Under the pieces are notes generated by a model. That model saw nothing but the letters and a program-made list of their open reading frames with translations. It made no database searches and was not told where the DNA came from. 64,000 bases of DNA, taken from the NCBI GenBank assembly GCA_025786725.1, contig JAHLTZ010000006.1, forward strand, positions 310,001 through 374,000, written 5' to 3'. This document shows, in pieces, positions 2,040 through 55,717 of the stretch. The stretch is from Syncephalis fuscata S228. Taxonomy: Eukaryota > Fungi > Zoopagomycota. The position numbers were made by a program, and so were the translations under genes. Positions within the stretch are counted from its first letter, which is position 1, and each line of letters begins with the position of its first letter.

Positions 2040-2450
2040 TAAAAATAATCAATTTTGGTCTAATATAACTTGGTTCTATTAAACACGGAGCTAGATGATG
2101 AAAAATATTAAATAATAAAAATCTTTAGTAGTTTATTGTGATTTGGCGGTCAAATGGCTACATTTGATATATATTCCTACATTTAAACTAAACATTCAAT
2201 TTATTGAATATGCTGATGGCGGTGAATTACATTAAAGTCTAAAATACTCATCATCGTAGATTTATTATCCAATATGCACATATCCAGTATGCATATATAC
2301 TCTATTCATTTATATCATTTCCATCTATTACACACTACTGTATGCTATTTTATAACATAGTGAATACATTCTATTTATTATACAAATTAATACACTCCAC
2401 TCGCTCCACTCGCTACGCTGTATATTCATTATATTGTATGCTATTTATCG
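2040..2450. repeat. Dispersed AT-rich repeat family copy (inverted relative to 3620-3990)
   Basis: Aligns by eye as reverse complement of 3620-3990 and in the same orientation as 7040-7270; boundaries approximate. Confidence 0.65.
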
Positions 2451-3619
2451 TATAGCGCATAAGAGCTATGCAACACCATTGTTGTTTTGATTCTAGATTA
2501 TTATTAAATAAGTGTTTTTTATGTTTTGGTGCTTTTGGCATCGGAAAGGCGCTGTGCATTAACACCATTTGTGCGGGCGCTTGAATGGCCATATTGGTAC
2601 ACTGTACCTTTAGTACTGTAGATTTGACATAGATATTATATACTTTATATTTATAGAGTGTTGTTATATATTGTTATACAGTATACTGGCCACACTACAT
2701 CGATTGGCGTTGTCCATTTTACCCTAGTTTATCTTTAAAGTTGGCCCTTCATTACACTTTTTGCTAATGACCATATTACACAGTCACAGTTGGCATATTG
2801 ATAAAGTTAACAGTAAATTAACGAATATATATACTGCAAATCCGATTGGTTCTGCGTACTCGCATGACAATTCTGGCTATAATAAACCAATAAAATAAAA
2901 TGTCTAAATATTTATTGTTTTTATTTAGGATTGTATATGCATATCATAGCAATATTGGTCAAATATTGGTGAAAATCGTTAAATATAAATATAAATTTGT
3001 TTATTTATCGCTATGATTTGTTTATTATGCTAGTTTGTCGATTGGTGTATAGTATACTGGCTACTGGTTGTCAATCTGGCTTATTCTAGTGCAGTTTGCA
3101 GTCATTGCAGTGATTTCAGCTAATGACCAGTCAGTATGGTCCTTGCAGGTCTTACTCGTATATCAGCTGGGTATTTTGTTTGTTTTACGCCGCGTATGCA
3201 TCGATTGCATTGCCCGGGTTGTTTCTGGCTATTGAGCTATGTAATGGTACGCTTTATTCGTTCTATTTCACTTATATTGGCCTCAATGTACACAGCACGC
3301 CACTACATCACTTCCGTTTTTGTACCACCTTCCTAATATGGAGTATTGCCGTGACTCGGTTTAACATTCAACTCCAGAGCCCGTAGTAATACAGCCACCC
3401 ATTGGGCCATTTCCGGCTGACCTTGCCATTACTGTGGATACGCATTGTTTTGCTTGATCAACACCAAAGCCATTGCTAATTGACAATTGCCGGGTTGTCT
3501 AGCAGACGGTTACAATAATTGATTTGTTAATAATTAGCCTGGTGCAAAAATAAACAGATTTTGGATAGAGGAAAGATGGGTGATCATAGAAAACATAAAA
3601 AGCGGTGTCAAAGTTAAGT

Positions 3620-4769: not shown

Positions 4770-6508
4770 AATGGTGATTAGTGTGTTAGCGGCCGGCTAC
4801 CAAGCAATATAACAATCAATGTTATATTGATGACTTTAAATTTAGTTCACTAACTTACTAACCTGTATTGATAATTACAAATTTATATCATAAATAAAAA
4901 TCACCAAATTGTTTTAGTGTGCTAGCGGCCGGCTACACAACATTACAACATACTAACTTTATATGTATTGTTTTATATTTAGGTACTTGGACACTAACAC
5001 TAACACTTGTTGATTATTATAGATTTTAGATAGCCGAACACCGACACCAACATCAACATCAACACCAACACAACACCGGCACCAACATCGACACCAACAC
5101 CGGCACCAACATCAACACCGGCACCAACACCAACACCAACACCGACATCAACATCAACACCGGCACCAACACCGACACCAACACAACACCGGCACCAACA
5201 CCGACACCAACATCAACACGGGCACCAACACCAACATCGGCACCAACACAACACCGGCACCAACACCGACACCAACATCAACACGGGCACCAACACAACA
5301 CCGGTACCAACACCAACACCGACACCAACACCGACACCAACACCAACATCAACACCAACACCAACACAACACCAACACCGACACCAACATCAACACCAAC
5401 ACCAACATCAACACCAACACCGGCACCAACATCAACACCAACACCGACACCGACATCAACATCAACACCAACACCAACACCGACACCAACACAACACCGG
5501 CACCAACACCGACACCAACATCAACACGGGCACCAACACCAACATCGGCACCAACACCAACACCAACACCAACACAACACCGGCACCAACATCGACACCA
5601 ACACCGGCACCAACATCAACACCAACATCAACACCGGCACCAACACCAACACCAACACCGACATCAACATCAACACCGGCACCAACATCGGCACCAACAC
5701 CAGTACCAACATCAACACCAACAGCAACATCAGCACCAACACCAACATCAACATCAACACCGGCACCAACATCGGCACCAACATAACACCAACACCGACA
5801 CCAACACAACACCGGCACCAACACCGACACCAACATCAACACCAACACCAACACCAACATCGGCACCAACACCAACACCGACATCAACATCAACACCGGC
5901 ACCAACATCGGCACCAACACCAGTACCAACATCAACACCAACAGCAACATCAGCACCAACACCAACATCAACATCAACACCGGCACCAACATCGGCACCA
6001 ACACCAACACCGACATCAACATCAACACCGGCACCAACATCGGCACCAACACCAGTACCAACATCAACACCAACAGCAACATCAGCACCGACACCAACAT
6101 CAACACCAACATCAGCACCAACACCGACATTAACATCAACACCGGCACCAACATAACACCAACACCGACACCAACACAACACCGGCACCAACATCAACAC
6201 CGGCACCAACACAACACCAACACCGACACCAACACAACACCAGCACCAACATCAACACGGGCACCAACATCAACACGGGCACCAACATCGGCGCCAACAC
6301 CAACACTAACATTATTATTGTTATTTAGATTTTAGATAGCCGGCCACGGACACCTGACGTAAGTATTATTATTATTAATAGCCGGCCGCTAGCACACTAA
6401 AACCAAATACAAAATATTAATTCAGGACAATTGTCTACTAACGTACTAACATTGTATTTATTATTTTAGCATTGTAGGTAGCCGGCCGCTAACACACTAA
6501 TCGCCATT
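4770..6508. repeat. Two nested inverted-repeat pairs (32 bp outer, 25 bp inner)
   Basis: Outer 4770-4801 vs 6477-6508 (31/32 complementary); inner 4911-4935 vs 6379-6403 (25/25). Confidence 0.9.
5034..6307. repeat. AC-rich hexamer array (ACACCA/ACATCA/ACACCG/GCACCA) with higher-order blocks
   Basis: About 1.27 kb of 6-bp periodicity with recurring 5-bp units that shift the frame. Confidence 0.95.
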
Positions 6509-7450: not shown

Positions 7451-7752
7451 CATTTGATAAACAAATTAGTTAATGCAAATTGACTATAGCTTTGATGCTA
7501 GTAGGGCAGATCAATGAATATTTACATTAATAACAAGTTCAAGCGAAATAGGAACATGATGTATTAATAAGTATGCAAATAAAAAAAAGCTAAAGATAAA
7601 ACAGCGTAAACAGCAACAACATAGTACTGTAATGATGATATATGCGTACTAAATAATAAATATACAATAATAAATATTTAAAAAATTAATACTATTTAGC
7701 ATTCAGTTTCATGTTTAATAAAGCAGATATGTAGTTAGTTGCATGAAAAATA

Positions 7753-9507
7753 CTTAGCGCAAATGCTGGCACATAATGCTTAGCACAAATGCTGGCACAT
7801 AATGCTTAGCGCAAATGCTGGCACATAATGCTTAGCGCAAATGCTGGCACATAATGCTTAGCACAAATGCTGGCACATAATGCTTAGCGCAAATGCTGGC
7901 ACATAATGCTTAGCACAAATGCTGGCACATAATGCTTAGCGCAAATGCTGGCACATAATGCTTAGCGCAAATGCTGACACATAATGCTTAGCACAAATGC
8001 TGGCACATAATGCTTAGCGCAAATGCTGGCACATAATGCTTAGCACAAATGCTGGCACATAATGCTTAGCGCAAATGCTGGCACATAATGCTTAGCACAA
8101 ATGCTGGCACATAATGCTTAGCGCAAATGCTGGCACATAATGCTTAGCACAAATGCTGGCACATAATGCTTAGCGCAAATGCTGGCACATAATGCTTAGC
8201 GCAAATGCTGGCACATAATGCTTAGCGCAAATGCTGGCACATAATGCTTAGCGCAAATGCTGGCACATAATGCTTAGCGCAAATGCTGGCACATAATGCT
8301 TAGCGCAAATGCTGGCACATAATGCTTAGCGCAAATGCTGGCACATAATGCTTAGCGCAAATGCTGGCACATAATGCTTAGCGCAAATGCTGGCACATAA
8401 TGCTTAGCGCAAATGCTGGCACATAATGCTTAGCGCAAATGCTGGCACATAATGCTTAGCGCAAATGCTGGCACATAATGCTTAGCGCAAATGCTGGCAC
8501 ATAATGCTTAGCGCAAATGCTGGCACATAATGCTTAGCGCAAATGCTGGCACATAATGCTTAGCGCAAATGCTGGCACATAATGCTTAGCACAAATGCTG
8601 GCACATAATGCTTAGCACAAATGCTGGCACATAATGCTTAGCGCAAATGCTGGCACATAATGCTTAGCGCAAATGCTGGCACATAATGCTTAGCGCAAAT
8701 GCTGACACATAATGCTTAGCGCAAATGCTGGCACATAATGCTTAGCGCAAATGCTGGCACATAATGCTTAGCGCAAATGCTGGCACATAATGCTTAGCGC
8801 AAATGCTGGCACATAATGCTTAGCGCAAATGCTGGCACATAATGCTTAGCGCAAATGCTGGCACATAATGCTTAGCGCAAATGCTGGCACATAATGCTTA
8901 GCGCAAATGCTGGCACATAATGCTTAGCGCAAATGCTGGCACATAATGCTTAGCGCAAATGCTGGCACATAATGCTTAGCGCAAATGCTGCACATAATGC
9001 TTAGCGCAAATGCTGGCACATAATGCTTAGCGCAAATGCTGGCACATAATGCTTAGCGCAAATGCTGGCACATAATGCTTAGCGCAAATGCTGGCACATA
9101 ATGCTTAGCGCAAATGCTGGCACATAATGCTTAGCGCAAATGCTGCACATAATGCTTAGCACAAATGCTGGCACATAATGCTTAGCGCAAATGCTGGCAC
9201 ATAATGCTTAGCGCAAATGCTGGCACATAATGCTTAGCGCAAATGCTGGCACATAATGCTTAGCGCAAATGCTGGCACATAATGCTTAGCGCAAATGCTG
9301 GCACATAATGCTTAGCGCAAATGCTGGCACATAATGCTTAGCGCAAATGCTGGCACATAATGCTTAGCGCAAATGCTGGCACATAATGCTTAGCACAAAT
9401 GCTGGCACATAATGCTTAGCGCAAATGCTGACACATAATGCTTAGCACAAATGCTGGCACATAATGCTTAGCGCAAATGCTGACACATAATGCTTAGCGC
9501 AAATGCT
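7753..9507. repeat. 26-bp minisatellite TGCTTAGCGCAAATGCTGGCACATAA, about 67 copies
   Basis: Nearly homogeneous head-to-tail units; variants GCGC/GCAC and CTGG/CTGA; no spacers. Confidence 0.98.
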
Positions 9508-17754: not shown

Positions 17755-17859
17755 AGGTATTACCAATAACATGGTGTATACACAAAGGGATGATGCCAAT
17801 AATAAATTTGTTTTATTTTCATTTGAACAGCTAATAAATTATAATGGGGAATTACTGTA

Positions 17860-18457
17860 CTTTGACTTTCACAATTTCATTTATCCATTTCACTCCTCAA
17901 CACTTTTAGTTACAATCAAACACCCATTCATTACTATAACATGTATAATATTACATCCAACATTAATTAATTCATATGTAATTATCAATACAATAATGTA
18001 ATTAATTAGTTATTTTTATTATTGCGTTAATATATATACATTGTCATTATGATATTAATTGTTCAAAATGCCATTTATTTAGTCAATTGGCTATAGGAAA
18101 AGTGGTTGTTTAATAAACGACTTTTATAATAATTATATTGATATTGACCTTACATCACAAATATACCCAAAATGCAACAGTAGAATATTAGAAAATATAA
18201 AAAACCATTTAGATGCAATAATCCATGTTGTATGTAGATCCAACAACAGCAAATGCGGAATGACATGGAATTACAATTATATGGTTTCTATTAATATTCG
18301 ATCAATCTTTCTATACATGGCCAACAACAACAATAATCGCCTCATGAATAGCAAAGTAGTTAAATGAAAGCATTATAATTATGTTTGTTGTGCAATAGCA
18401 GCATGAGTTCAATTAAAACAAATTTTGCTTTGAGGACTCCAAATATGGGAGTCAAAG
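17860..18457 (+). mobile_element. Non-autonomous TIR element with Fanzor C-terminal relic (copy A)
   Basis: TA|CTTTGACTTTCACAATTT ... AAATATGGGAGTCAAAG|TA. ~18149-18367 translates LTSQIYPKCNSRILE...IHVVCRSNNSKCGMTWNYNYMVSINIRSIFLYMANNNNNR. Confidence 0.8.
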
Positions 18458-18832
18458 TAAAATTCAAGCCATGACATACATCAATTTAAATACAGCTGTT
18501 AAATAAATAACTATTTATATAAATGACGATATCCATACTTGATGGAACAATAGTAACGTTAACGTTAAATGAAACAATTAAGTCATGGTTTAACATTTAA
18601 TAATCTCTCCTTTCTAAATATGGACAACGACGACTTGACCCATCGTCTTTCGCTATAATCTTTCTTGTTCTTGCTCTCTCTCTCTCTCCACTCTCCTACT
18701 GACTTCCTTACTTATTTGGCCGTTTACTGCAGCAGTCTATGCACCATCATTACTTGCTTTTTTTATTAAAACTAACTGTTATTAAATTGCATCTAAATAA
18801 CACCAATTCACACACCTGCGTCGATATTTAGT

Positions 18833-40835: not shown

Positions 40836-41230
40836 TTAATTTCTTATAATAGTAGGTGGTAAGAAATTAAAAGGCCTTGGTTCGCCACTGGCCATTGTAC
40901 TGAATATACTGTGCATGTTTCTACTGGCATTAACATCACGCTGCCATACCTTACAACAATTATTGCTTTGGCAAACAAGTACGCTATGCATTGTGCTGTT
41001 GTGTTTTTGCAAATGTAAATTTGCCATCTCCTTTTTCTTGCACTTGGAACAGACTTTGATGTATTGTATTCGTCAATATCTACAATCACCAAAATTCCTT
41101 CTTGCTCAGCAGTTTTGAGCATCTTTCTGCAACGATTGGCCAGTACAGCAACCTTGCCTTTTATAGAAATGGCAAATCGGACAGCTCAAAAGCAATAAGT
41201 GGAATTTTATCATCAAGTGACTGAATAGGT
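40836..41230 (-). pseudogene. Fanzor1 (TnpB-like) C-terminal relic (copy D): RuvC-II, zinc finger, RuvC-III
   Basis: KIPLIAF...KGK...LVIVDIDEYNTSKxCSKC...HSVLVCQSNNCCKVWQRDVNASRNM...RP, with two frameshifts; no RuvC-I seen upstream. Confidence 0.88.
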
Positions 41231-41459
41231 AGAGGCTATGTGCTAGTGTAAATGTTAATAAATCTTGATCCATATTATTGTTACTGTAAAGTATTCAAAG
41301 CATTACAATTTGATATTTAATGCCATTCACCATCCAGTTCCATGTTTAGTAGAACAATAAATGTGTAGTTTAATCAAGCAAAGGATGTCAGCTTTGATCT
41401 TTTGGTACTGAATTATATGAGTTTACTAATGAATTATTTATTATTAGTAAACTATTTTA

Positions 41460-41935
41460 CTTTGGCTCTTAGATTTTATTTACTCATTTCACTTCCTTTT
41501 TCTTAATGCTTTTAAACACAACTAAACATTCATTCATCACTATAGTATGTATAATATTATATCTAATATGAATTAATTCATATGTAATTATCAATACAGT
41601 AATGTAATTAATTAGTTATCTTTATTATTGCTTTAATATATATATATATATTGTCATTTATTTAGTCAGATTGGTTATAAGAAAAGTGGCTGTTTAATAA
41701 ACAACTTTATAAGAATTAATTAATATCGACCCTACATACAATATGCTCAAAATACAATAGTAGAAATTAGAAAATAAAAGAAACTATTCAGATGCAATAA
41801 TCCATGCTGTATATAGATACAATAACAACAAATGCAGAATGACATGGAATTACAATCATATGGCTTCTATTAATATCCAATCAATCTTTCTACACATAGC
41901 CAACAACAACAATGATCAACCTCAAATGTTTCAAA
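41460..41935 (+). mobile_element. Non-autonomous TIR element with Fanzor relic (copy B; right end missing or degenerate)
   Basis: Starts TA|CTTTGGCTCTTAGATTT; colinear with 17860-18345; encodes IHAVYRYNNNKCRMTWNYNHMASINIQSIFLHIANNNNDQP. Confidence 0.78.
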
Positions 41936-42267
41936 CTCAAATAGTATGTTACATTTTTATTTAAATGTTTAATATTATTACTGATACAATGTTCTTTACA
42001 TTTAATTTAATTTAATGGAAATGATAATGTTATTATATATATTAATATTTATTGAAAATAATCATTTAAACACAATTTAATCAAATCAAATCATTACAAT
42101 AGATTGTGTAAAATGATTTACTGCACCGGGGGATTAAAGTAAAGTTCAACCAAAATTTATTTATTTATACTCTTCTGTCTCTTAACATCTTTGCCGTCTT
42201 ATCACTATCGTGGTTATTGCTGTCCATATCTTCATCTACGCGCAGCTAGTTCATTGTCATCGCTATC

Positions 42268-48770: not shown

Positions 48771-48928
48771 TGTTGTCAAAAAGGTCTAAGCAAAAACAAC
48801 TATAAAAAAGAAAAAGACGCCTTGAAGCGGATACAAATAATGTAAAATTTTAGTTATCATATTTCTTTTTTTCTATTTAATTTAATCTGCTTTAAATCAA
48901 TTTTATTTAAATTGTATTCAACTTTTTA

Positions 48929-49668
48929 CTTTGACTCCCACATTTAGAGTTCTCAAAGCAAAATTCGTTCCAATTTAATTTATGTTGTTCTGCGCAGCAA
49001 ACATAGTTATAATGTTTTTATTTAACTACTTTGAAATCCACGAGGCCGATTATTGTTGTTGTTGGCCATGTATAGAAAATTGATCGAATATTAATAGAAG
49101 CCATATAATTGCAATTCCATATCATTCCGTAGTTGTTGTTATTGTTACTACGTACAGTGTGGCTTCTTTGCGTCTAAATGGTCTTTTATATTTTCCAATC
49201 TTCTACTGTTGCATTTTGAGCATGTTCGCGATGTAAGATACTCGTCTATGATGACAAGAAGGTAGGACAACTAGCGTTTCTGATGTTCACCATTGTTTTG
49301 AGCATTGTTGGTATCAACTTAATAGGCGCAATTACTTTGCCAATCATTAATGAAGCAAATGACCTTCACCATATGCAATAATAATAGGCTAAGTGTCTTT
49401 ACCAGGAAGATCTTGTAGCGACAGTTGTAATCAGAATATACGGCATGCCGTTGAGGTTACTTGAACAGGTGTTAATGTAAAATAATATAAATAAAGACTA
49501 AGAATTAAATAATGTTATTTATTGATGTTCAAATACACATGTTATTTATATCGTTATATTTGGTATTATTGTGTAATCTATTACTGAATAAAATATCTAA
49601 AAAGAAGATAAACGACAACGATAAGAAAAAGGCGACGAAATCAGTAAATAAAAATGTGAGAGCCAAAG
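48929..49668 (-). mobile_element. Non-autonomous TIR element with Fanzor relic (copy C)
   Basis: TIRs CTTTGACTCCCACATTT (48929-48945) and reverse complement of 49652-49668 CTTTGGCTCTCACATTT (15/17), TA on both sides. Minus strand encodes PIIIAYGEG..F..LMIGKVIAPIK...LVIIDEYLTSRTCSKC...WNCNYMASINIRSIF with frameshifts. Confidence 0.85.
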
Positions 49669-49940
49669 TACAACAGCTTCAAATGATTAATTAACCAACG
49701 CTATAATGTCTATTTGATATAATACACCACAATCTATTCATCTGTTACGATTATTACTACTATTTCTACCACTGCTACTACTGCATATCAATAGCTATAC
49801 AGAGACAGTATAGTATGAAAGAAGTGAATTAGTTACATTTCTTTTTACTTGACCAGATCTGTAGATCTATACGTGTATATATACTTATTGAACAGTGCAT
49901 TCCTTGAGCAATATTTGTTATATATTTCTTTTCATTTAAT

Positions 49941-50662
49941 ATGCTGTCATCTAACATTTCATTGTCAAGTATTAGTAGCTCGTTAGCTACTACTAATGTT
50001 ACAAGCCGCGGCATAGCACCAAGCCAAGTTGCTTATCCAGATTGGGAGAGTTTAGTAAGTCGTTATCGCTATTGTGTTTAATAATACAAGTTGACTAATT
50101 AATTACTATAATAATAGGAACAACAGGTACCACCAGTCAATTGGACCTAAATCAACGACATGCACCACAACTAGTATTACCAGGTCTGTATATCGGTTCG
50201 TTGCAAGTATCCCGTTCGCTACCAGAGCTTCGGGAACGAGGCATTACACATATTATTCATGCTTGTGACTCGGATGGACGGCCCTTACCCTCCTCTCTTA
50301 CTACTATGCACAGCTACAACACTAGTGACAATATTATAAACAATACTGGCATGCCTTTGTTGTCTGATGGAGGCCCAGTAATTGAATTAAAGACTATCGA
50401 CATTTATGATCGAGGCCGTCATTCGTTGGCTGCCTTTTCTGATGCATCACAATTCTGCCGACTAGCATGGGCCAATGGCAGCAATGTGCTTATTTACTGC
50501 TTAACCGGCATTGACGCAAGCCCCGTCATTGCTGTAGCCATTATTATGGAAATGACGGGTATGGCTTGTGTTGATGCTATGCACTGGGTTCAAATGCGTC
50601 GACGATGTACCAATATTCGAGGTGTCTATCTTCGCTTACTAGAGGCAAGTTATTCAATACGT

Positions 50663-50693
<31 letters not shown>

Positions 50694-51047
50694 GGAACAA
50701 CACTAATATATTTATATACAGGAATATGAACCTGTATTATATGCACAACAAACAACAATGAATGAAACAGCATTAGCTATCGATCCATCATTGCATGGGT
50801 CACTACAACAACAGTCATCAAAACGGTAAGTTGTTGTTAATAAGCTTGTATTTTGTTTATATTTGCATTAATGCCATACTGAAGTAGTCTAAGAGACCAT
50901 AATAATGACCATGAAGACGATGAAACAATGGGTCACAGCCATCGAAAGAATCTCTTGCTTGATTCTACTGCTACTGATTCTAATGCAAACTCGGCCTCGC
51001 CTATTACTATTTGTACACTTCCTATTAACTGGTCAGGTCCAAATTAG
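49941..51047 (+). CDS. STYX-like dual-specificity phosphatase-fold protein (copy 1), multi-exon; 3' end approximate
   Basis: QLVLPGLYIG, GITHII, NVLIYCLTGIDASP, VQMRRRC; 1-nt deletion near 50149 relative to copy 2. Confidence 0.8.
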
Positions 51048-51186
51048 CTTTTTTGTTTCATTTATCCAATATGACTGCTACTATACTAATATATATATAT
51101 ATATACATTATTACCAATAATTTTTTTATTCCATTACTGTTATTACTAACTATACGTCATGATTTTTATATAAATGACGTAGATAT
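49952..51186 (+). repeat. ~1.24-kb near-identical direct duplication (partner 54221-55453)
   Basis: Identical by eye apart from about five substitutions and small indels. Confidence 0.95.
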
Positions 51187-52295
51187 AAATTTATTATTAT
51201 TATTGACAATTTATTTAGCTGATTGTTTATTTATTTTTGTTAAGGTTATTAATTACCATTAAACAATTCATTAACTATTTATTATGAGTTGATGGTCAAA
51301 TAACTACTTTAATAATATTTGCGTAATTGAACTACACATTGTTCTATTGAATATAGGAACGGGTAGTGAGTTATATCAGTCATTGAATCTATTATTATGG
51401 CTATTCTGTATAAACATATCTATTGTGAATACCACCATATCGTTACATTCTCGCAGTATTGCAATATTGATATTTGCATTGTCCTTATTCTCTAACTTTT
51501 TACAGTCCCATATTGACCTATTTGGTGTTAGCTAGCTTAACGATTATTAGCTATAAATTATTAACTAAATACATATTTTAATAAATCAATAAAGTTATGC
51601 ATACTCATATTGTTTCATTCGTCTGTATGGTTCAATAAATAAAATGAATCAAGGTGTATTGGTAATTGAGCCAGGGACAAACAAGCGACCGTTATGAACA
51701 GTACGTGATTACTAATAAATAAATAATTTAGAATAGGATGAATATACAATGGAAAGTATACAATTAATAGCGTTGAGTCTATAATGCATAAAACCTTACC
51801 ATTGATGTACAATATCAACGAACTTTGTAAAATGGTATTATTCGTTATTTACAATAGATACTTCCATCATAAAAATGTACTATTTTATTTCCAATAGCTA
51901 TGATCACAATAAAGCATTTAACTTTACATATAATATTTGAAATGTCAATAGAGCGTTAGTTTACAAATCTAATTGTAAAAGCATTGCGCCCACACTGTAA
52001 AAGCATTTAAAAATATTGAAAAGTTATTCCAGTGTAATAGTGTGTAAAAAAGATGTAAAACTAGCTACAATCGTAACAATATCTTTATGTAAAATAAAAC
52101 ATTATATGATATTTCGCACAATTATACTAAGTAAATTATTAATCAAATTCAAATATATTATATCCAATTATTTATTGCCTCATCTACCTTTACATAACTT
52201 AATTTTTTAATTACTAAAATAATCAAAATTAAGCGCGATCTTCCCGCTGTAGCTTAAACAAAACAATATGCATCGCCAATTGCAAAAAAACAAAG

Positions 52296-54210: not shown

Positions 54211-54932
54211 ATGCTGCATTTAACATTTCATTGTCAAGTATTAGTAGCTCGTTAGCTACTACTAATGTTACAAGCCGCGGCATAGCACCAAGCCAAGTTG
54301 CTTATCCAGATTGGGAGAGTTTAGTAAGTCGTTATCGCTATTGTGTTTAATAATACAAGTTGACTAATTAATTACTATAATAATAGGAACAACAGGTACC
54401 ACCAGTCAATTGGACCTACAATCAACGACATGCACCACAACTAGTATTACCAGGTCTGTATATCGGTTCGTTGCAAGTATCCCGTTCGCTACCAGAGCTT
54501 CGGGAACGAGGCATTACACATATTATTCATGCTTGTGACTCGGATGGACGGCCCTTACCCTCCTCTCTTACTACTATGCACAGCTACAACACTAGTGACA
54601 ATATTATAAACAATACTGGCATGCCTTTGTTGTCTGATGGAGGCCCAGTAATTGAATTAAAGACTATCGACATTTATGATCGAGGCCGTCATTCGTTGGC
54701 TGCCTTTTCTGATGCATCACAATTCTGCCGACTAGCATGGGCCAATGGCAGCAATGTGCTTATTTACTGCTTAACCGGCATTGACGCAAGCCCCGTCATT
54801 GCTGTAGCCATTATTATGGAAATGACGGGTATGGCTTGTGTTGATGCTATGCACTGGGTTCAAATGCGTCGACGATGTACCAATATTCGAGGTGTCTATC
54901 TTCGCTTACTAGAGGCAAGTTATTCAATACGT

Positions 54933-54965
<33 letters not shown>

Positions 54966-55453
54966 GGAACAACACTAATATATTTATATACAGGAATATG
55001 AACCTGTATTATATGCACAACAAACAACAATGAATGAAACAGCATTAACTATCGATCCATCATTGCATGGGTCACTACAACAACAGTCATCAAAACGGTA
55101 AGTTGTTGTTAATAAGCTTGTATTTTGTTTATATTTGCATTAATGCCATACTGAAGTAGTCTAAGGGACCATAATAATGACCATGAAGACGATGAAACAA
55201 TGGGTCACAGCCATCGAAAGAATCTCTTACTTGATTCTACTGCTATTGATTCTAATGCAAACTCGGCCTCGCCTATTACTATTTGTACACTTCCTATTAA
55301 CTGGTCAGGTCCAAATTAGCTTTTTTGTTTCATTTATCCAATATGACTGCTACTATACTAATATATATATATATACATTATTACCAATAATTTTTATTCC
55401 ATTACTATTATTACTAACTATACGTCATGATTTTTATATAAATGACGTAGATA
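54211..55453 (+). CDS. STYX-like phosphatase copy 2 (duplicate; altered first codons, possibly pseudogene); span is the duplicated block
   Basis: Exon 2 intact (VNWTYNQRHAPQLVLPGLYIG) but the ATG at 54211 is out of frame. Confidence 0.7.
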
Positions 55454-55717
55454 TGAATGCTCACGCTGTCTATAGTCATATGATCGGTGTAAATAGGCGG
55501 CGTGTTGACCACATGCCATAACTGCACCCCACCCTCCCCTTTGCTTTTATAAACAGGCTAATACATTGTAGGGATGTATGTGTGTGTATGTGTACACGGA
55601 GTGGTACATTTACATATTTCATATTCTATTCGTTCAACCATCTGCACACACCAAACACACATCCCAGCAGGTACTTACACAATAAAAACAAGAACAACAC
55701 CACAGAAATGTGATGTA

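Follow-up and report, generated by a model that had tools for sequence, protein, structure and literature searches.

The window analysed here is a 64,000-nt stretch of the Syncephalis fuscata S228 genome (contig JAHLTZ010000006.1, positions 310,001 to 374,000), part of a 29.4-Mb, 371-contig eukaryotic assembly. In the window, copy A, a 622-bp non-autonomous element (17848-18469, plus strand), follows closely on the end of a phosphofructokinase gene, which has short GT..AG introns, and is followed closely by the start of another gene. Short introns of this kind, together with the Fanzor1 relatives, would point to an early-diverging fungus. The ends of copy A were placed by locating the left and right end motifs, with the ends of the family derived from 38 two-ended copies. 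The left terminal inverted repeat (17848-17877, plus strand) has 3 mismatches to the family motif, and the right terminal inverted repeat (18441-18469, plus strand) was assigned by family alignment and location of the end motif. Between them, on the plus strand, lies a relic of the C-terminal part of a Fanzor1 gene (18137-18363), comprising a zinc ribbon (TNB) and a decayed RuvC-III motif; it was recognised by translation, by tblastn against the C-termini of P0001 and P0005, and by a profile match to GtFz1 and PpFz1 in the PDB. The ancestral TAA stop codon of the relic is at 18361-18363, and a 1-nt loss shifts the relic's own stop to 18365-18367.

Directly 3' of the relic, on the same strand, are ~106 nt of non-coding DNA (18364-18469), referred to here as the 3' module. 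The stretch 18345-18480 is made up of the end of the short relic ORF, these ~106 nt and 11 nt of flank. The module of copy A begins with a stem-loop region, SL1 (18379-18407, plus strand), in which the loop is one base longer than in the family form and one closing pair is broken. A linker follows (18408-18420, plus strand), with a TCAATT motif directly after SL1, and then a long hairpin, SL2 (18421-18464, plus strand), whose 14-bp outer stem includes a G.U pair and whose 3' arm is the inner right inverted repeat. The flank (18470-18492, plus strand) consists of the 8 nt at the position of a target-site duplication, where a duplication is no longer recognisable in copy A, and then the ~15 nt expected to correspond to a guide. 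An Rfam search gave no match to the 3' module; its sole match, a sub-threshold snoRNA, was at 17902-17967 on the opposite strand.

Two more copies lie in the window. Copy C (48917-49680, minus strand), a 764-bp member of a long subfamily delimited by its end motifs, has the same arrangement as copy A on the minus strand near 48917-49300, with its 3' module at 48917-49013. As the original prediction had noted, copies A and C share about 100 nt after the relic ORF; their identity is about 84% through the relic and this segment (18353-18462 versus 49032-48924, minus strand). The pairwise similarity stops at 18462/48924, where the element had been thought to end, but similarity among 30-88 copies of the family continues 7-10 nt further, to a shared tip that commonly reads ...GTACAGTTCAACC, and copy A therefore ends at 18469. 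Copy B (about 41448-42151, plus strand) belongs to a subfamily with a different 3' region, in which it retains only the right repeat and tip, without SL1 and without the 5' arm of the hairpin. A further relic of the Fanzor TNB type is found just upstream of copy B (40842-41194, minus strand; tblastn with P0050, E = 2e-6).

A search of the genome at the DNA level gave 617 first-look candidates; for 40 of these an identity was scored, in the range 80-85%. With ≤3 mismatches allowed, 99 genomic occurrences of the hairpin motif were counted, compared with 0 of a reversed control, and the family comprises at least 99 copies. Ninety copies were fetched for family analysis, with alignments spanning 30-88 of them. 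The hairpin was absent from metagenome contigs scanned for the exact pattern. The left end of the family reads GGAGCTACTGTACTTTGACTCCCACATTT and, except for the outermost few bases, the two ends are inverted complements of each other, giving terminal inverted repeats of ~29 bp. Outside the shared tip the sequence diverges, and the flanks of different copies are unrelated.

The boundaries were evaluated by scoring 72 combinations of offsets for how well the 8-nt sequences flanking the two ends agreed, using 38 two-ended copies. At the best offset, which corresponds to the tips, three of the 38 copies (L019, L023 and L087) matched at 8/8 positions and six at 6/8, whereas about one base in three matched in the background. 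The placement of the ends at the shared tips by the best of 72 offsets, with matching 8-nt flanks, indicates that the family makes 8-bp target-site duplications. Duplications of this length are generated by hAT, Mutator-like, Merlin and P elements. The element had initially been described as flanked by TA, and a Tc1/mariner-type, TA-flanked element was considered; it was rejected since the TA is inside the longer inverted repeat, most right ends have TT at that position, and the flanks of the element are the 8-bp duplications further out. One subfamily (L002, L007, L010, L013, L025, L057, L070, L074, L075, L084, L093 and L100) has a right tip ending in ...TTGGGAA, a disrupted SL1, and constant sequence outside both ends; it appears to have inserted into another repeat and then to have been copied as part of that repeat.

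Members of the family are 537-831 bp long and lack a functional ORF. A Fanzor relic was detected by tblastn in 38 of 39 two-ended elements, indicating that a single internal-deletion derivative of an element with Fanzor1 gave rise to the family. The coding content of each copy is limited to the last ~100-170 codons of the Fanzor1 gene, to which the ~106 nt of 3' non-coding sequence are joined. Members of a subfamily with a different spacer (L053, L063, L073, L087 and others) were considered as ORF-less "ghosts" and rejected, as tblastn shows the TNB relic in these copies too.

The relic reads ...TSQI.PKCN...C..WN.N.M.SINI..IF...., with better copies reading IDEYLTSQICPKCN and, further upstream, IIAYGGG.F...APTK. 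The Pfam Cas12f1-like TNB domain (PF07282) matches 71 places in the genome; PF01385 has zero matches there, although this model may simply not see Fanzor1. A profile built from six relic peptides (A2) matched 678 proteins in a library of 1.8 billion proteins, including full-length proteins of 560-1040 aa. Against the PDB, the same profile found the Fanzor1 of Guillardia (GtFz1; E = 3e-4), then that of Parasitella (PpFz1; E = 0.01), and then TnpB. The closest full-length relative, P0005, ends in ...NRDHMASMNIRNIFLYMANNN..RPEIFQ. The RuvC-III codon pair is TGCAAT in most copies and CGCGAT, TGCGAT or CGCAAT in several others, which is the pattern expected if an ancestral Arg-Asp pair had decayed at CpG sites. 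This CpG-to-TpG/CpA signature, seen in the RuvC-III codons and family-wide, suggests cytosine methylation of these repeats. A second, better-kept family of relics is also present, with WQRDVNASRNM intact; it includes a stop-free reading frame of 131 aa (L033/L043, C339:~387.1k) and one of 98 aa (L032/L045, C290:~29.0k), and no upstream Fanzor exons were found within 3-4 kb of either.

The majority sequence of the last 97 nt of the family is predicted to fold into two hairpins, SL1 and SL2. The predicted family form of SL1, present in many haplotypes, is a 7-bp stem with a 6-nt loop, the commonest versions being GTTGTGC-ATAACA-GCATGAC, GTTGTAC-ATAACA-GTACGAC and GTTATGC-ATAACA-GCATGAC. The linker after SL1 reads TTCAATTGGAAC, and TTCAATTAAAAC in copy A. 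In SL2, a 14-bp outer stem pairs GAATTTTGCTTTGA with TCAAAGTAAAATTC around an inner GACTC/GAGTC stem, and the G.U pair of the outer stem is kept in 75 of 88 copies. A hairpin overlapping the right terminal inverted repeat had been proposed, and this holds for copy A: positions 18371-18467 fold with -23.2 kcal/mol (z = -3.5), with 0 of 200 shuffled sequences folding as well, and the 3' arm lies in the repeat. In copy C, the fold is not better than chance (z = -1.4). Across the family, the sense strand folds with a mean of -19.0 kcal/mol (z = -1.7) versus -13.6 kcal/mol (z = -0.8) for the antisense strand, and is the more stable strand in 75 of 80 copies; because the copies share ancestry, this figure is a property of the ancestral sequence and not the outcome of 80 independent tests. 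In one subfamily (L062, L067, L082, L097, L098 and L101-L103), a 36-nt insertion after SL1 forms an 11-bp hairpin of its own, in which copies differ by G.U and compensatory changes, e.g., GTAAC/GTTAC versus GTAGC/GCTAC.

For covariation across copies, a check that the original prediction had named, there are signs in SL1, but over the structure as a whole it is weak. In SL1 (helix 3), double changes occur at 5 of 6 pairs, and subfamilies switch one pair from G-C to A-U and another through G.U, A-U and G-C; in one subfamily, 16 copies have an A.C mismatch in SL1. For the whole structure, pairing is 82.9% versus 82.1% in shuffles, and the covariation score of 0.163 versus 0.157 was reached by 50 of 500 shuffles. 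RNAalifold predicted 0 pairs from the raw 88-copy alignment, and returned a structure only after trimming of the alignment and ribosum scoring. Overall, G.U pairs outnumber A.C pairs by 357 to 116. Selection on individual copies was considered as the source of this excess and rejected, since the excess consists mostly of wobble pairs fixed in the consensus. Departures at Watson-Crick consensus pairs are near parity in a hand tally (about 143 G.U versus 110 A.C), implying that individual copies decay regardless of structure.

The copies are old. The median pairwise identity of two-ended copies is 82.5%, and the best identity between copies with unrelated flanks is ~87%, with the exception of one pair. 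This pair, L101 (C361:738581-739845) and L102 (C361:748332-749596), is 99% identical inside and lies 10 kb apart, while the tips (the outermost 4-10 nt), the duplications and the flanks differ. Ectopic gene conversion between old insertions explains this pair better than recent transposition, given the differing tips and duplications and the 10-kb spacing. Identity to the family majority is 0.89 for the ORF relic, 0.88 for the 3' non-coding sequence before the repeat, 0.92 for the inner right repeat and 0.70 for the tips. The original prediction had drawn attention to the module as conserved and structured; as the module is conserved no better than the dead ORF, "conserved" does not mean selected, and as far as present-day selection is concerned the comparison goes against that prediction. 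By these measures, the copies appear to decay neutrally, with no sign of selection acting on the module today.

Characterised systems offer points of comparison for the module. Saito et al. (2023, PMC10432273) described the omegaRNA of SpuFz1 as a 75-nt scaffold encompassing the 3' inverted repeat, followed by a 14-15-nt guide. Xu et al. (2024, PMC11423790) compared three Fz1 structures, in which SL1 "consistently contains seven base pairs"; between SL1 and the guide, the fungal Fz1s have just one more stem-loop. The PpFz1 omegaRNA in their Table S3 has CAATTAA immediately after an SL1 of 7 bp and a 6-nt loop. The family described here resembles the PpFz1 and SpuFz1 omegaRNAs in having a predicted 7-bp SL1 with a 6-nt loop and a single SL2, after which the guide would follow, and, of the proteins with solved structures, GtFz1 and PpFz1 come closest to the relic. 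The TT-CAATT(A/G)(A/G) that follows SL1 recalls PpFz1 as well, a match that is short, and suggestive rather than proof. Important differences from PpFz1 are the length of SL2 (14-19 bp here versus 4 bp), the lack of overall sequence similarity, and the fact that the structure here is a prediction. By eye, the 3' module does not obviously resemble in sequence the region 3' of P0001 (L120), a related fragment of Fanzor1 in another organism, and the contig that encodes P0005 stops 35 nt past the stop codon.

Carriage of Fanzor1 by DNA transposons offers further parallels. Yoon et al. (2023, PMC10711439) listed hAT among the Fanzor1-associated transposases, and sequenced the reRNAs of insect-virus Fanzor1 transposons with terminal inverted repeats and target-site duplications, which reach ~15 nt past the duplication. 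Like those elements, the family here is non-autonomous, with clear inverted repeats and target-site duplications, and the repeat would be part of the scaffold; whereas the viral RNAs were sequenced, the guide position near 18478-18492 is an expectation by analogy. This expectation revises the original prediction. Its candidate scaffold does lie 3' of a Fanzor1 relic on the same strand, runs into the right repeat and has a predicted two-stem fold, but the guide had been started too early, right after 18459-18462, inside an element that ends at 18469. Bao and Jurka (2013, PMC3627910) found Fanzor1 in cut-and-paste elements without a transposase of their own, in the Mucorales and other eukaryotes, with old families at about 80% identity to the consensus. 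The present family shares the non-autonomous carriage of Fanzor1 and the old age; it differs from the MuDr-type elements of the Mucorales, which make 9-bp duplications, in making 8-bp duplications and in that only a C-terminal fragment survives.

The closest counterparts in kind would be the published Spu-1 "ghost" loci. In Spizellomyces punctatus, 134 ORF-less ghost elements with ~30-nt repeats retain the omegaRNA region, and ghost omegaRNAs worked with SpuFz1 (PMC10432273). The elements here are similarly short and multi-copy (540-830 bp, versus ~550 nt there), with ~30-nt inverted repeats, a putative omegaRNA region at the right repeat and no working Fanzor. In contrast to the ghosts, every copy analysed here bears a C-terminal fragment of the Fanzor1 ORF, and the copies are much more decayed. 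Moreover, S. punctatus has 19 full-length genes, whereas no full-length Fanzor of the family was found here.

Together, these data argue that the 3' module is probably a fossil of the ancestral element's omegaRNA gene, i.e., the omegaRNA and right end of a decayed, non-autonomous Fanzor1-derived transposon that is inactive today. The reading draws on the adjacency of the module to a Fanzor1 relic, on the two-stem fold of the sense strand with a 7-bp SL1, and on the precedent for a right repeat inside the scaffold. In the ancestral element, the module would have been laid out as SL1, a CAATT linker and an SL2 ending in the right inverted repeat, and transcription in the sense of the nuclease gene would have continued across the repeat and the 8-bp duplication, ending in ~15 nt of flanking DNA that would have served as the guide. 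Internal deletion of the Fanzor1-carrying element probably yielded a non-autonomous DNA transposon that reached hundreds of copies by means of a transposase acting in trans. Given the 8-bp duplications, this transposase would have been hAT-like or similar. The copies would then have decayed neutrally.

The main competing explanation, which is unlikely, is that the module was never a guide RNA and instead combined the 3' untranslated end of the nuclease gene with a cis-acting right end, the hairpin having arisen from a subterminal transposase-binding motif present as an inverted, imperfect copy of the repeat. Elements of the hAT-like and Mutator-like kinds often have subterminal repeats, and in SL2 the 5' arm does resemble the repeat core in reverse complement, apart from an insertion of 3 nt. 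The weak global covariation and the equal conservation of the module and the ORF relic would also fit this explanation. However, no counterpart hairpin exists at the left end of the element, and the sense strand folds markedly better than the antisense strand, owing to G.U pairs that are A.C on the other strand. SL1, for its part, lies outside any repeat, has the reported 7-bp form of Fz1 and shows compensatory changes at the level of subfamilies. Lastly, the right repeat is in the guide RNA of those Fz1 elements with terminal repeats that have been characterised, from fungi and insect viruses. On balance, the evidence points to a fossil omegaRNA gene.

The original prediction went further, proposing that the relics donate guides to a Fanzor acting in trans, such that right-end transcripts would load a Fanzor encoded elsewhere and direct it to sequences flanking the relics. 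The idea itself is not new, since ORF-less ghost loci with working omegaRNAs have been published for Spizellomyces (PMC10432273); that ghost omegaRNAs work with SpuFz1 speaks in favour of live donation, as does the fact that the scaffold of copy A still folds well. Live donation would nonetheless require a nuclease, and an intact Fanzor was not found in the 29-Mb assembly with five N-terminal queries and profiles. All TNB matches sit in open frames of ≤186 aa, and further Fanzor exons were not found at ten of the best TNB loci with 3-4 kb of upstream sequence each. Full-length queries P0005 and P0014 match the genome solely over their last ~140 residues, with no match for their N-terminal parts at E ≤ 1. 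A profile of the RuvC-I/central region (A3) gave a single match, on contig C317, which is also the only match of a further query (P0008:560-945); a second N-terminal profile (A5) had zero matches. At the C317 locus, a frameshift separates ...GNEFHK from IRRCSTKEYY, and stops follow IDEYLSFR and CSICLPP. This locus (L122, C317:731500-736500, at about 2300-3000 on the minus strand) is the only place found that keeps the central part of Fanzor1 (AVDPGISQVF..., IRRCSTKEYY), and it belongs to a different family. These results apply to a fragmented assembly of 371 contigs, searched with divergent queries for a protein family with fast-diverging N-termini, only the first-look candidates having been scored.

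The one public run that contains the locus is RNA, as shown by contigs that skip the GT..AG introns in both neighbouring genes; it is available as contigs only, which are poly(A)-like and cannot show small RNAs. The phosphofructokinase contig stops at 17827, 21 nt short of copy A, and the contig of the downstream gene starts at 18625. Between these genes, the only RNA contigs on copy A come from other copies of the family, at 90-95% identity, and none crosses the right end of copy A, among contigs of this one run, in which small RNAs would not appear. The depth over 18444-18627 is 8.8, compared with 180-400 in the two neighbouring genes. Some copies of the family are, on the other hand, transcribed within longer RNAs: a 1925-nt RNA contig (run X1), whose depth of about 1985 is the highest of the region, includes a sense-oriented family copy from elsewhere in the genome, which differs from window positions 18086-18338 at 24 sites over 253 nt. 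While such abundant transcripts could be taken as support for guide donation, the copies are ~17% apart and decay at the rate of the dead ORF, and many scaffolds are broken, that of copy C among them. Guide donation in trans today is therefore improbable, given the neutral decay of the copies and the failure to find a nuclease.

Least probable of all, and very improbable, is co-option of the relics independently of Fanzor, either to give rise to small silencing RNAs or to act as regulatory hairpins within transcripts of the host: hairpin-derived small RNAs from MITEs are known in other eukaryotes, and a long, near-perfect hairpin (14-19 bp) in hundreds of dispersed copies, some within transcripts, might suit such a role, but individual copies show no sign that the hairpin is under selection, and Dicer substrates usually have longer stems.

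With no working nuclease found in the genome, the stretch at copy A is most likely ordinary transposon debris, of which the 3' module would be the fossil omegaRNA portion. There is a slim chance that the family is not wholly dead, and that a transcribed and foldable SL1-SL2 provides guides for a Fanzor1 missed by the assembly, or structured small RNAs adopted by the host; the family would then constitute an "orphan omegaRNA" population that has outlived its own nuclease. The analysis documents a high-copy family of Fanzor1-derived miniature transposons and establishes where its copies end, that it makes 8-bp duplications and how its guide-RNA module was probably laid out. This helps the repeat annotation of the genome and shows where the guide should start when Fanzor guide RNAs are mined. 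Ghost omegaRNA loci, hAT-type carriage of Fanzor1, and the inclusion of repeat and duplication within the scaffold have been published already, and no new question is opened. Elsewhere in the window, repeats of other kinds were observed: arrays with a 12-bp period at 5000-6320, a 26-bp tandem array of about 66 units at 7593-9300, and a direct duplication, 99-100% identical and spaced by ~4.27 kb, that pairs 49948-51190 with 54217-55458.
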